This document shows positions 23,101-35,100 of a stretch of DNA of 64,000 nt, piece after piece. The notes under the pieces are model-generated. The model saw only the letters and a list, made by a program, of their open reading frames with translations. It was not told the DNA's origin and ran no database searches. Both the position numbers and the translations under genes were made by a program. The stretch covers positions 314,893-378,892 of the forward strand of contig NIVC01000487.1 in assembly GCA_002269645.1 (NCBI GenBank), given 5' to 3'. Within the stretch, counting starts at the first letter, position 1; each line of letters opens with the position of its first letter. The DNA is from Macrostomum lignano (lineage: Eukaryota).

Positions 23101-26100
23101 CGTGTACTGCATGAAAAGTGCATTTGAAGAAGCGTGTACTGCAATAAGAGTGCATTTGAAGAAGCGTGTACTGCAATAAAAGTGCATTTGAAGAAGCGAG
23201 TATTAAAATAAGAGTGCATTTGAAGAAGCGTGTACTGCAATAAAAGTGCATTTGAAGAAGCGTGTACTGCAATAAAAGTGCATTTGAAGAAGCGTGTACT
23301 GCAATAAAAGTGCATTTCAAGAAGCGAGTATTGATAAAAATGCATTTGCAGCAGCGCAAAGTGAACTAAAAGTGCTTTTGATCAAGCACGCACTATAAAA
23401 AGAGTGCACTAATAACTCTGCCAACTCATAGGCCGAGGACGGACTAGCTCACCTCATCGGTCGCGTTTTCGCCAGATGGTTTTGAACTCTGTTGCTGCTG
23501 CTGTTTCATCTGCTTTCGCGTCTTGTAGCCCTTGAAGCCGGCCTGGATCTTCTCGGCAGCGGCTCCGACCTCGGGATCAGTCAGGTCGATGTCAACCTGC
23601 GGCGGGGTCAATTATATAGTGTTTTGTTTTTGCTGAAACTCATTATAGACACTATAGACACTCTCTAGACACTCTCTAGACACTCTAGACACTCTCTAGA
23701 CACTCTAGACACTCACCAGACACTCACCAGACACTCACTAGACACTCACTAGACACTCACCAGACACTCACCTGACACTCACCAGACACTCACTAGACAC
23801 TCACCAGACACTCACCAGACACTCACCAGACACTCACCAGACACTCACCAGACACTCACCAGACACTCACTAGACACTCACTAGACACTCACCAGACACT
23901 CACCAGACACTCACCAGACACTCACCAGACACTCATTAGACACTCACCAGACACTCACCAGACACTCACCAGACACTCATTAGACACTCACCAGACACTC
24001 ACTAGACACTCACCAGACACTCACTAGACACTCACCAGACACTCACCAGACACTCACCAGACACTCTAGACACTGACTAGACACTCACTAGACACTCACC
24101 AGACACTCACCAGACACTCACCAGACACTCACCAGACACTCACCAGACACTCACCAGACACTCACTAGACACTCACCAGACACTCACCAGACACTCACCA
24201 GACACTCACCAGACACTCACCAGACACTCACCAGACACTCACCAGACACTCATTAGACACTCACCAGACACTCACCAGACACTCACCAGACACTCATTAG
24301 ACACTCACCAGACACTCACTAGACACTCACCAGACACTCACTAGACACTCACCAGACACTCACCAGACACTCACCAGACACTCTAGACACTGACTAGACA
24401 CTCACTAGACACTCACCAGACACTCACCAGACACTCACCAGACACTCATTAGACACTCACCAGACACTAACCAGACACTCACTAGACACTCACCAGACAC
24501 TCACCAGACACTCACCAGACACTCACCAGACACTCACCAGACACTCTAGACACTGACTAGACACTCACTAGACACTCACCAGACACTCACCAGACACTCA
24601 CCAGACACTCACTAGACACTCACTAGACACTCACCAGACACTCACCAGACACTCACTAGACACTCACCAGACACTCACCAGACACTCACCAGACACTCAC
24701 CAGACACTCACCAGACACTCACCAGACACTCACCAGACACTCACCAGACACTCACCAGACACTCACCAGACACTCACCAGACACTCACCAGACACTCACC
24801 AGACACTCACCAGACTCCCCAGACACTCCCCAGAGACTCACTAGACTCAACACTATTTAACAGCTGTGGTGGGAGATATGTCGTATGTTTGCAAGAGTAA
24901 GTCAGATGAGGATATTATTCACCTCATCTTCCGACTGCTTTGGCGGCTCCTTCTGCTGCTGCTGCTTCATCTGCTTCCGCGTCTTGTAGCCCTTGAAGCC
25001 GGCCTGGATCTTCTCGGCCGCTGCGCCGACCTCAGGATCGTTCAGGTCGATGTCAACCTGTCACGGTGATAGATTAATTTGGGATTGTTTATTTATCAAA
25101 ATAGTCGAAATAGTGTTGCAGGCAGAAATCTAACTTTCTTCAAGCCTTCACCTCATCTTCGTCTGGTTTCTTCTTATCCTGATTCTTCATCTGTTTCCGC
25201 GTCTTGTAGCCTTTGAAGCCGGCCTGGATTTTCTCGGCCGCCGCCGCCACCTCCGGATCATTCAGGTCGATGTCAACCTGCAAGAAAATTCGTAGTTTTT
25301 CTCCATTTTCTACTATAAGTAGAGTAAGCAGCGAAAATTTAGCAAGCGGGCTTTTTTATTTTAACTGAAAACAAAGCCTACAAAATTGTATGGAAAAAAG
25401 TTGGGCATTTTTCTAGCCGTTTTTTCCTGCCAGAGCAGGGCGGGGGCGGGGGTTTTGAGCGTTGTGTTACAATGAGCTGCTGCAGCCTCTCTGTACTCCC
25501 CATCAAGGGTAGGGATCCCGTTTACCCTCACGCGCCGAAACGTGAGGCAGGTTCGTGCTGGTTGGCAGGATGAATATTTCACAGCCACTAATCATCTCCA
25601 TTTGTCTCTCTCGCCCTCTCTCCCCTGAGCTGCCTTGAATTCGTCTCTCTCCCGTCTCTGACTGATGGTTGTTAAGGACGCCAGAACGGTTGCTAGAGAT
25701 GATTAGAGAGGCTTTATACTAGCTAAAGCAACTAGGCAAGACTGGCTTAGGGTGAGCGGACCGAGGCCGAACGTCGGTCCTTGAGTCGAGATGAAGCGGG
25801 AGACTATAAATAGCTAGAGCCACTACGTTTTTCCCAGCCAGATTCCCACTGCGGCAGTTTTTTCAACATCAAAGAGAAGCTCAAAAGAGAAATATATGAG
25901 TAAATAGTACCGAAATCAGCTACCGAACCTGACAGCGGCTTTTCCCTTCGCGACGGCTGAACGGGTACAGCTGAGCACTGTACTCAGTCAGATTCAGTGT
26001 ACGCGTCACTTGGGGACAGGAGCGAGCATGGGATTGGGATTGCTGCGCATGGCGGGATTTCGGCCTCTCTAACCCTGCAGCTAGTTGTGACCTCGGATAT

Positions 26101-32100: not shown

Positions 32101-35100
32101 TAGAGCACAATTCAAAAGCAATGCAACAATCTCAGTGGCATTGTTGGGACACAAGCTACAAACGCAATGAATAGTAAACACAGCCCAGCCTAGCTCAAGG
32201 CTAGTAATTTGTTGGGCATTTATTGGGACATTGCAGCCAGGCCTATTTTTTGAACAGCATTTGTTGGGTCGCACTTATTGGGACAATACTGATTCTAATC
32301 GCGACTACTTCTGAGTTCTGACTTTTCAAAACAGACCCAGCATTAGTTGAACAAGTTCTATTAAAGGGTTCCTTTATAGCGTATTAATGATTACTAAAGC
32401 AAGCCTATCTTAATTGATTTCTTTTACTCACAGCTTCTGAAGTCAGCAACGCCAGCGACATGCCTAAGAGACAAGAATGCGCTTTAACGATCAGCAGCGA
32501 GCATTCTGATCTCGCCGCTGCATCCGTCATTTGGTTCACTTGCTGCTCACAAGCCGCAGCAGCAGCAGCAGCAGCAGCAGCCGCTATCCGTGCAGGCAGT
32601 CAGTCTATTTGTGAATTTTCTGGTGGATCTGAAGAAAACCCGTCTGGCACAGGATTAAAGAGAAAGAGACGATCTGTTTTGGGTGAGTATTATCTGCTGT
32701 AGAAGTATTGTACACCAGAGTACTTGTGTTACCTGGTAGAGCACAATTCAAAAGCAATGCAACAATCTCAGTGGCATTGTTGGGACACAAGCTACAAACG
32801 CAATGAATAGTAAACACAGCCCAGCCTAGCTCAAGGCTAGTAATTTGTTGGGCATTTATTGGGACATTGCAGCCAGGCCTATTTTTTGAACAGCATTTGT
32901 TGGGTCGCACTTATTGGGACAATACTGATTCTAATCGCGACTACTTCTGAGTTCTGACTTTTCAAAACAGACCCAGCATTAGTTGAACACGTTCTATTAA
33001 AGGGTTCCTTTATAGCCTATTAATGATTACTAAAGCAAGCCTATCTTAATTGATTTCTTTTACTCGCAGCTTCTGAAGTCAGCAACGCCAGCGACATGCC
33101 TAAGAGACAAGAATGCGCTTTAACGATCAGCAGCGAGCATTCTGATCTCGCCGCTGCATCCGTCATTTGGTTCACTTGCTGCTCACAAGCCGCAGCAGCA
33201 GCAGCAGCAGCAGCAGCCGCTATCCGTGCCGGCAGTCAGTTAATTGATGAGTTTTCTGGCAGAGCTGGTTATTTTTTAAGTTTCTGAATCGAGAAGCCGA
33301 TTAACTGTTGTGTGCTTCACTGGAATATTATTCAGAGGACGCATTTTTTTTGCAGTCTGTTTCTAATAAAATCCGGTGCAATGACCGCGGTAGAGCTCTA
33401 GCATTTGCTTTTTATAGTATTTGTGTATATTCTTTTTCAAGCTATGCTGGAATTGTTGGGACAGCCCCATCCACACTGGCTATGGTGGAATTGTTGGGAC
33501 AGCCCTATCCACACTGGCTATGCTGGAATTGTTGGGACAGCCCTATCCACACTGGCTATGCTGGAATTGTTGGGACAGCCCTATCCACACTGGCTATGCT
33601 GGAATTGTTGGGACAGCCCCATACTATAGTGTGTGCTGGCTTCTGCTATAGTGTGGTTCATTTCCGCATCCTTTTACGTAGCATTCTGTGGGTCCGAATA
33701 GCTGACATGTACCTTTTGAGTAATTCTAGTGATTGTGTCATAATCAATAAAGTACATTTTTATGAACAGTGGAGTTTCGCTACAGAATTGTTTTTTCCCA
33801 GTGGCACTAAATGTAGCAAATTTTGTTTATTCAGATCGTAAAATTTTTTTGATATGTGTCAATGTCGTTTGTTTTCGATAACCTTAAAGTCCCTTGCCAT
33901 TTACCATCCTGTCTTCTATAATCTATGATCGCTGAAATTATCTGGTGAAATTTGACGCGCTGATATTATTGCCTTAAGTGGAATTCAGCAACACACCAGG
34001 GTTTTTTAATTCTGTTTTAGACAAGTATACATGTACAATCTGTTGTGAGTTCAATGCACCTCGAAAAATGCTTTCCAACTGTTTTCAGTAAGCCAAAAGC
34101 ATGTTGTCAATAAAAATCGATTTGGTGGGTTGAAAATTGCCTGTGTGGGGACGTGTGTGTGTGTGATTTTTCGTGTGTCGGAGCAGTCCCAATATGTGCA
34201 AGCTTTTGCACACTTGGCCAATAAGTGCCTCGTGCACGTTTGTGTGTGCATGCCTGTCCTATCAGTGGAATGAACAAAATTGCCTCAGCGCTGGTTGTGT
34301 GATAATGTCCGCATTCGAGGTGCAGAATGGAACTCCAGACAGATAGCTCACCTCGTCCTCCTCAGCAGCGTCTTGGTCGTCCCGAGTTCTGCAACGGTTT
34401 TTTTAGAGCAAAAATTTATCCAGTTGGTCACTCAGGGATAAAAACTGATCCCATCTTGCTCATTAAATGCATGCATTACAGATTCCCCTCTTTTAATCTG
34501 GCGGAAAGAGACGAAAATGATTAGAAATTTCTAATCAGACTAAGATAGGCAAGAATGTTAAACTGATCAATCTGCTTATTTCTGTCTTCTGCTCTTACTA
34601 AAGCAATCGAAGATACACGACAACTGTAACGCAAGAAAATTTTCAACCCGAACGCTTTTAGAAGCAAAATTGCAGGGTAAGAATTCAGCAGCGTCTCTCA
34701 GCCCTCAGTCTTACAACTTTTTTCCTTTAAGAGGCGAGGACAGCTCGACCCGGTCAGGACAGCGCGCAGGGAATAGGAAGGGGATGGACACAAAATCCGT
34801 AATCGCAATCCCATTCTTAATCAGGCCGAGCAATCCAGACTTAATCCCCTTCCCGAGTGACACGAGAAAAAGCATTATTTTGCGCGCCATTTGTATCCAG
34901 TGACACAAGCTCGCAGACAATCTGACTGCAGTGACACAAGCTCGCAGACAATCAGACTGCAGTGACACAAGCTCGCAGACAATCAGACTGCAGTGACACA
35001 AGCTCGCAGACAATCTGACTGCAGTGACACAAGCTCGCAGACAATCTGACTGCAGTGACACAAGCTCGCAGACAATCTGACTGCAGTGACACAAGCTCGC

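Follow-up and report, generated by a model that had tools for sequence, protein, structure and literature searches.

The 64,000-nucleotide stretch of Macrostomum lignano DNA analyzed here (contig NIVC01000487.1, positions 314,893 to 378,892; below, the window) contains a tandem array of nearly identical 636-bp units, each of which has the form of an exon and an intron, and it raises the question of whether this array is a gene of its own or part of something that has spread. A first-pass annotation described it as a hidden gene for a secreted, multicopy peptide precursor, nested antisense in a sperm or cilia gene and amplified by tandem exon duplication. Our analysis points to a different origin. 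Window positions 26225 to 34248 are probably one copy of a dispersed, nonautonomous mobile element with unique arms on either side of an internal macrosatellite, and the locus is better viewed as an annotated copy of an element-borne macrosatellite than as a unique nested gene. Window positions 21791 to 43287 match NIVC01000487.1:336683-358179 at 100% identity, and every protein match to the conceptual product of the array came from M. lignano.

The array lies in a block with the same ends at unrelated sites

We compared the window with 13 further M. lignano loci, which were reached through annotated proteins; the protein clusters involved (Mlig029855 g10-g39, Mlig026960, Mlig003618g1, and Mlig033615g2) are spread over at least 16 contigs. 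Homology to the window starts at 26225/26226 in six loci (position 1 to 2 of the left-arm query) and stops at 34248, which is position 1008 of the right arm, likewise in six loci; beyond 26225 and 34248 the flanks of the window have no similarity to those of the other loci. The six left flanks are unrelated to one another, and the single match among the five distinct right flanks, between loci L003 and L006, is repeat-like (75% identity over 545 bp). Loci L007 and L011 have identical right flanks and are the same site. The block thus has identical ends at six or more unrelated sites, and this locus is only one of several that carry the array. We considered that the loci could be the three subgenome copies of the M. 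lignano assembly, which have diverged by 1.4-2.4% (PMC10733133), and rejected this given the unrelated left flanks and the right flanks that are distinct save for the one repeat-like match; three subgenome copies cannot account for at least six sites. The boundaries are good to about 5 nt only, because TG-rich sequence adjoins both ends. The main parts of the block are as follows.

26225-34248, plus strand: dispersed element copy, made up of a left arm of 2.47 kb, the 636-bp macrosatellite, and a right arm of 1.0 kb
26229-26260, plus strand: left terminal inverted-repeat-like sequence, GTTTGTGCATTAGGCATTTCTTGGGACAAG, which includes the 14-nt motif described below
34183-34241, minus strand: right terminal region, with the inverted-repeat-like sequence CTTGGCCAATAAGTGCCTCGTGCAC and the inverted 14-nt motif
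26219-26227 and 34244-34252, no strand assigned: possible target-site duplication of 9 bp, GTGTGCATG, read from the sequence
33441-33619, plus strand: 38-bp minisatellite of the right arm, with TTGGGAC in each unit and a copy number that differs between loci

At its extreme ends the block has an imperfect inverted repeat, in which about 20 of 26 positions match by eye (GTGCATTAGGCATTTCTTGGGACAAG versus GTGCACGAGGCACTTATTGGCCAAG), and nearly all copies sit directly between (GT)n tracts, with GTTT adjoining each end. The 14-nt motif GCAYWTHTTGGGMC is confined to the block within the 64-kb window. It occurs on the plus strand at 26242, 18 nt from the left end, and on the minus strand at 34186-34199, about 50 nt from the right end; a further minus-strand copy lies at 26307, and the intron of each unit carries two plus-strand copies. 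A subterminal segment of 21 nt (26309-26329) recurs as its reverse complement in every intron. We counted 36 occurrences of the heptamer TTGGGAC in the window, compared to 6.9 expected, and nearly all of them fall within the block. We did not detect a transposase or any other Pfam domain in the open reading frames (ORFs) of the arms; weak summed matches of arm ORFs and the unit to QIL1, L35p, and DUF6632 were set aside as repeat artifacts.

The copies elsewhere sit in diverse gene contexts. The copy at L003 is antisense within a gene with a TIR domain (TIR_2), the copy at L005 (5440-14794) falls within the span of a gene for myosin heavy chain and has the same orientation as that gene, and the copy at L009 is downstream of a cathepsin L gene, at a distance of 4 kb. 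At L005, the strong splice sites of the element could disturb the host myosin mRNA or add exons to it.

The units of the array are exon-plus-intron modules

The tandem array that the first-pass annotation reported is present, with units that are at least 99% identical and spaced 635-636 bp apart, and it is built of repeated exon-plus-intron modules, in keeping with the proposed exon duplication. The hydrophobic segment occurs eight times in it, and the spacer is present in full seven times. In each unit, the exon is preceded by a pyrimidine tract and an ag acceptor and ends in G followed by a gtgagt donor, and its translation in the originally proposed frame is ASEVSNASDMPKRQECALTISSEHSDLAAASVIWFTCCSQ(A)11IRAGSQSICEFSGGSEENPSGTGLKRKRRSVL. 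The exons of the window copy are listed here with the sequences that follow them.

28696-33240, plus strand: 636-bp macrosatellite of 7.15 head-to-tail units, each a 249-nt exon and a 387-nt intron
28680-28868, plus strand: first array exon, 189 nt, between acceptor cacag and donor gtgagt
29256-29504, plus strand: internal exon 1, 249 nt, intact
29892-30140, plus strand: internal exon 2, 249 nt, intact
30528-30775, plus strand: internal exon 3, 248 nt, with a 1-nt deletion, a frameshift, and a premature stop
31162-31410, plus strand: internal exon 4, 249 nt
31798-32046, plus strand: internal exon 5, 249 nt, E-to-K variant; the GenBank coding sequence starts at 31791 and has this as its first exon
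32434-32682, plus strand: internal exon 6, 249 nt; used as exon 2 of the GenBank coding sequence
33070-33287, plus strand: diverged terminal exon, ...IRAGSQLIDEFSGRAGYFLSF and then a stop codon
33365-33370, plus strand: first AATAAA after the stop codon, 78 nt beyond it, with others at 33746 and 34109

The first array exon and the terminal exon, which ends in ...EFSGRAGYFLSF with its stop codon at 33285-33287, are as originally described. The 5' 16 nt of the first array exon are unique and the remainder is array sequence, and this exon and its acceptor at 28680 are kept in six of the eight loci checked. The description of the internal exons as 249-nt, phase-1/phase-1 exons with the quoted translation holds for five of them but not for the third, in which TTT has become TT and the joined frame stops after ...KRQECA. 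Because of this frameshift, the joined exons are not one continuous ORF. An AATAAA is indeed found at 33746, where the poly(A) signal had been placed, but the one at 33365 comes earlier.

Across loci, arrays range from 4 to at least 18 units. Units inside one site have site-specific variants in common, which argues for unequal crossing-over and homogenization. Head-to-tail units that are at least 99% alike, site-specific variants, and variable copy number are together what led us to call the array a macrosatellite. The differences among the units of the window (3 per 249 exon positions and about 6 per 387 intron positions) are too few to be informative. We did not find a match to Rfam in the window, and our promoter and terminator scan, which is of a bacterial type, is uninformative for a eukaryote. 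We also considered the array as a source of minus-strand exons and discarded this idea, given that the sole long minus-strand ORF of each unit (101 amino acids) has no homologs among the protein matches and that all of the models are on the plus strand.

Plus-strand transcripts spliced at the unit junctions are already on record

The locus is not hidden, given that an RNA-seq-based GenBank model exists for it and that more than 40 sister models are on record.

31791-33287, plus strand: GenBank model BOX15_Mlig026960g1 (PAA82201.1, "hypothetical protein, partial"), transcript-based annotation

PAA82201.1 corresponds to the joined window exons 31791-32046, 32434-32682, and 33070-33287, and its sole difference from the window is that it has 4 Ala codons (12 nt) fewer in the (GCA)n run. 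It carries the junctions at which ...KRKRRSVL is joined to ASEVSN... as well as the predicted C terminus, so that the last three exons are joined exactly as the first-pass annotation predicted. The Mlig_3_7 annotation was assembled from RNA-seq data with StringTie and TACO, together with genome-mapped de novo transcripts, and noncoding and repeat-overlapping transcripts were excluded from it (PMC5730564). These records support the conclusion that plus-strand RNA is spliced at exactly the predicted unit junctions. We found no mention of the array gene identifiers in the full texts and expression-paper supplements that we searched. With a shorter protein query across the junction, the matches were limited to 7 M. 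lignano entries, none from transcriptome assemblies.

Not all models use the same sites. Several UniProt models use an alternative acceptor at 29320 and alternative donors at 29421 and 29464, with equivalent offsets in every unit. These sites define a 144-nt exon, in which a poly-Gln frame is open and periodic across the array; the use of this exon looks like noisy splicing of the repeat. UniProt models P0026 and P0028 start exactly at the equivalent of 28680, with VHPHSNS..., and about 30% of M. lignano genes are trans-spliced to a 35-nt leader ending in ATG (PMC8629364). A leader ATG would open the frame that begins VHPHSNS..., which is the poly-Gln frame and differs from the poly-Ala frame that was first proposed. 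The starts of these two models give a hint of either trans-splicing or a 5' boundary at 28680.

The repeated frame shows no sign of recent purifying selection

We surveyed 107 full units at ten loci. The GT and AG splice sites were present in all 107, and the poly-Ala frame was intact in 73 and broken in the other 34 (32%). One TGG-to-TAG change was found in 12 units and one frameshift in 5; these shared lesions show that homogenization has spread defects among units. The length of the Ala tract encoded by the (GCA) run varies from about 7 to 17 residues among the units examined. With this run left aside, we counted 19 substitution events in the exon (0.089 per nt) and 24 in the intron (0.062 per nt). 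The exon changes comprised 3 synonymous, 15 nonsynonymous, and 1 nonsense, compared to a neutral synonymous expectation of 22%; these are small numbers. The exon dN/dS was not below 1, and we observed no sign of purifying selection on the product in recent evolution.

An example of the peptide predicted from the poly-Ala frame is SVLASEVSNASDMPK. A KR inside the unit and an RKRR at its end place dibasic or furin-type sites at the bounds of each repeat, and KRKRRS closes each intact unit. The codons for KRKRR (AAGAGAAAGAGACGA) are also a purine-rich stretch beside the donor site. Among roughly 60 models, none has a genuine N terminus, as all are partial or start at an internal Met, and in the window an uninterrupted ORF across the units fails at the frameshifted third unit.

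Two diverged sister families, both from M. lignano UniProt entries, are informative about the history of the frame. Family C (P0054) is 55% identical to the repeat of the array (family A) and family B (P0050, P0052, and P0053) is 29% identical; neither was found in the fetched loci or among GenBank models. KRKRRS is retained in both. The hydrophobic "signal" segment is present in family A only, where the best 19-residue hydropathy (Kyte-Doolittle) is 1.51, a borderline value, compared to 0.57-0.66 in families C and B. In family B, conservation is limited to the edges of the exon, which a constraint on splicing signals fits as well as a constraint on cleavage sites. The unit belongs to no Pfam family, and we found no homologs outside M. 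lignano among 1.8 billion representative proteins. A further entry, P0051, is a 466-amino-acid Cys-rich repeat protein with 23% identity that looks unrelated to the array family.

The proposed first exon and the neighboring sperm-type gene

The 5' end of the nested gene had been placed at a TATA box followed by a 4-nt coding exon, ATGA. A TATA-like CTATAAATAG is present at 25804-25813 and an ATG at 25896-25898, followed by A and the donor gtaaat, but this putative exon lies 330 nt outside the block, is absent from the other copies, and is no better than chance would provide. An exon in that position cannot be common to the other transcribed copies. The 3.7 kb upstream of 28680 contains 4 ATGNGT sites and 31 stop-free, phase-1 ATG...GTR candidates, and the GTAAAT donor departs from the species consensus, GT[G/A]AG.

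The claim that the array is nested antisense in a sperm or cilia gene did not hold up either. We did not find an annotated gene that spans the array in window positions 21791 to 43287, which is weak evidence given that the GenBank annotation is filtered. The candidate host gene is instead self-contained.

38475-38888, minus strand: ORF of 137 amino acids with RIIa (E = 8.7e-14) and IQ motifs, single exon, complete

This ORF has a perfect IQxxxRGxxxR motif and the full architecture of SPA17 (sperm autoantigenic protein 17). Since that architecture is complete within 137 amino acids, the ORF needs no exons across the array; the block itself recurs elsewhere in unrelated contexts. The collection that we searched has no gene whose product is exactly this one. 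We infer that neither the TATA/ATGA "first exon" at 25805-25899 nor the SPA17-like gene has a connection with the array.

Other features of the window

Tandem Repeats Finder returned 71 rows, and the window is saturated with long minisatellites with units of 11-60 bp, several of which yield long spurious ORFs in the six-frame list. We did not find a Pfam family in the first ORF below, and the reverse-transcriptase fragment is probably part of a decayed non-LTR retrotransposon.

17772-20750, minus strand: 992-amino-acid ORF with poly-Gln at the N terminus, EEQRKLEEQM repeated about 50 times (encoded by a 30/60-bp tandem repeat), and an IQ-like motif at the C terminus
40179-40997, minus strand: reverse-transcriptase fragment, weak RVT_1 match
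45116-45547, minus strand: ORF resembling the MGC-24/CD164 sialomucin
60704-61192, minus strand: ORF with a helix-loop-helix domain at the Pfam cutoff

At 37283-37492, a (TAGGGT)35 tract with a 76% match, a rotation of TTAGGG, forms a degenerate interstitial telomere-like tract. The large chromosome of M. lignano arose by fusion, and such a tract may be of interest in that context.

Discussion

The reading that we favor is that of a nonautonomous mobile element whose internal macrosatellite is spliced when transcribed. RNA that crosses a copy, started in the left arm, by read-through, or by spliced-leader trans-splicing at the 28680 acceptor, would be spliced into a concatemer of 249-nt exons, with the diverged exon last and polyadenylation at one of the AATAAA sites. 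The ORF in the poly-Ala frame would be part of the family consensus and probably derives from a protein-coding repeat that the element carries or captured; it appears to be without detectable constraint today, and in the window copy it is cut short in unit 3. Several observations weigh against this account. The inverted repeat is imperfect (about 77%), the (TG)n around nearly every copy masks any target-site duplication, and we found neither an autonomous partner nor an empty site among the loci reached through annotated proteins. Given that neither was seen, the mechanism by which the block moves is one that we infer. RNA-seq reads match many copies, so transcription of the window copy itself is unproven. 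Further, 68% of the units are intact, two arrays are fully open (8 of 8 units in L005 and 6 of 6 in L012), and some of the frameshifts could be errors of the long-read assembly. Families B and C keep the frame and the unit length (80-83 amino acids); their units still start with ASEV and end with KRKRRS, and their terminal exon is similar. As read from these sequences, the retained frame argues for a past or possibly continuing coding constraint and for a protein-coding ancestry of the repeat family.

We considered whether the block need be a transposon at all, given that a gene-bearing block could have been copied between (TG)n tracts by recombination or by reintegration of circular DNA. The (GT)n directly outside both ends of nearly all copies, in direct orientation and with GTTT beside the ends, fits this alternative, as does the fact that we found no transposase, clean target-site duplication, or classifiable inverted repeat. 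However, the terminal motif is inverted at the two ends and repeated internally, like transposase-binding sites, and the window copy has a 9-bp flanking direct repeat and does not lie in pure (TG)n. We regard such copying as improbable. The unique nested gene as first written, with its TATA box at 25805 and a coding exon at 25896-25899 spliced to 28680, is one to which we give almost no credence. In its favor, the TATA-like box, ATG, and GT are where they were said to be, and the RIIa/IQ ORF and other IQ-bearing ORFs flank the array on the minus strand. Against it, its first exon is only one of the 4 ATGNGT sites and of the 31 phase-1 candidates and has a weak donor, it lies beyond the block and is missing from other transcribed copies, the GenBank model is 5' partial, and the supposed host is a complete SPA17-type ORF with no spanning gene annotated.

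A genuine coding family, element-borne or merely multicopy, would encode a secreted proprotein cut at RKRR between units by furin-type enzymes, starting at an in-unit Met (MPKRQE...) or in an undiscovered 5' exon and not at 25896. The open, symmetric phase-1/1 exon of 249 nt, the perfect splice sites of all surveyed units, the annotated spliced transcripts, and the frame, KRKRRS, and terminal exon of families B and C all fit such a family. Several models are named "Secreted protein" in UniProt, and an exon that is more variable than the intron, with an excess of nonsynonymous changes, is what a fast-evolving secreted protein could show. Nonetheless, not one of the roughly 60 models has a real N terminus, and almost a third of the units, including unit 3 of the window, carry a frameshift or nonsense change. 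Only family A has the hydrophobic segment, which derives from the unstable (GCA)7-17 run, the most diverged family keeps only the exon edges, for which splicing signals are an equally good explanation, and neither a homolog beyond the species nor a Pfam family was found in our searches. On balance, we consider a genuine coding family rather unlikely. That a translated, furin-processed product exists is similarly doubtful, the one line of positive evidence for it being the frame retention in the sister families. A mobile element that spreads a working tandem-exon gene, and with it a furin-processed, secreted, Macrostomum-specific repeat protein whose dose and repeat number change quickly, is less probable again, and we treat it as quite unlikely.

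The proposed element resembles several known systems, the likenesses being drawn from general knowledge, and it differs from each. Like Pack-MULEs, gene-capturing Helitrons, and CACTA elements, it is nonautonomous, has fixed ends at many loci, and carries transcribed and spliced exon-intron cargo with an ORF that is mostly decaying; however, no parent gene was identified here, the cargo has been amplified to a tandem array within the element, and the inverted repeat is weak. Elements that bear arrays, such as the foldback-type Tetris of Drosophila and the Helitron-associated satellites of bivalves, share the unique arms, the variable central array, and the terminal motifs that recur inside, whereas the unit here is a spliced exon with an intron and a phase-symmetric open frame, annotated as protein-coding genes. 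With the coding macrosatellites D4Z4/DUX4, RS447/USP17, and CT47 it has in common a unit size of several hundred bp to several kb, an ORF per unit, concerted evolution, and variable copy number. Those macrosatellites have a whole gene per unit, at one or few loci; in contrast, each unit here contains one exon, the exons are spliced serially, and the array is dispersed as part of a mobile block. The multicopy prohormones (FMRFamide-type genes and the npp genes of flatworms) offer the repeat that ends in RKRR with a KR within the unit. Unlike these, the unit here is 83 amino acids long with an intron per unit and a recurring hydrophobic segment, a large number of units are disrupted, and neither a verified start, a signal peptide, nor detectable constraint is present.

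In summary, dozens of M. lignano models annotated as "hypothetical" or "secreted protein" belong to a single repeat family and are best treated as such, not as separate genes. This family includes Mlig029855 g10-g39, Mlig026960, Mlig003618, Mlig033615, and many UniProt A0A1I8 entries, some with misleading domain names. UniProt entries P0015, P0023-P0028, P0033, P0050, and P0052 consist only or mostly of this repeat and have names such as UCH, Dymeclin, BAF250_C, Rho-GAP, DRIM, SANT, or Kazal-like domain-containing protein, which suggests that these models have been misnamed or merged with host genes that carry intronic copies. More broadly, an exon-plus-intron module amplified in a mobile element indicates that repeats can supply ready-made, phase-symmetric exons to transcripts. 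If the element does spread a working gene, its open phase-symmetric exons could be spliced in frame into host genes at phase-1 introns, and if the frame is translated, the product would be a rare example of a secreted repeat protein for which a mobile element drives the copy number.

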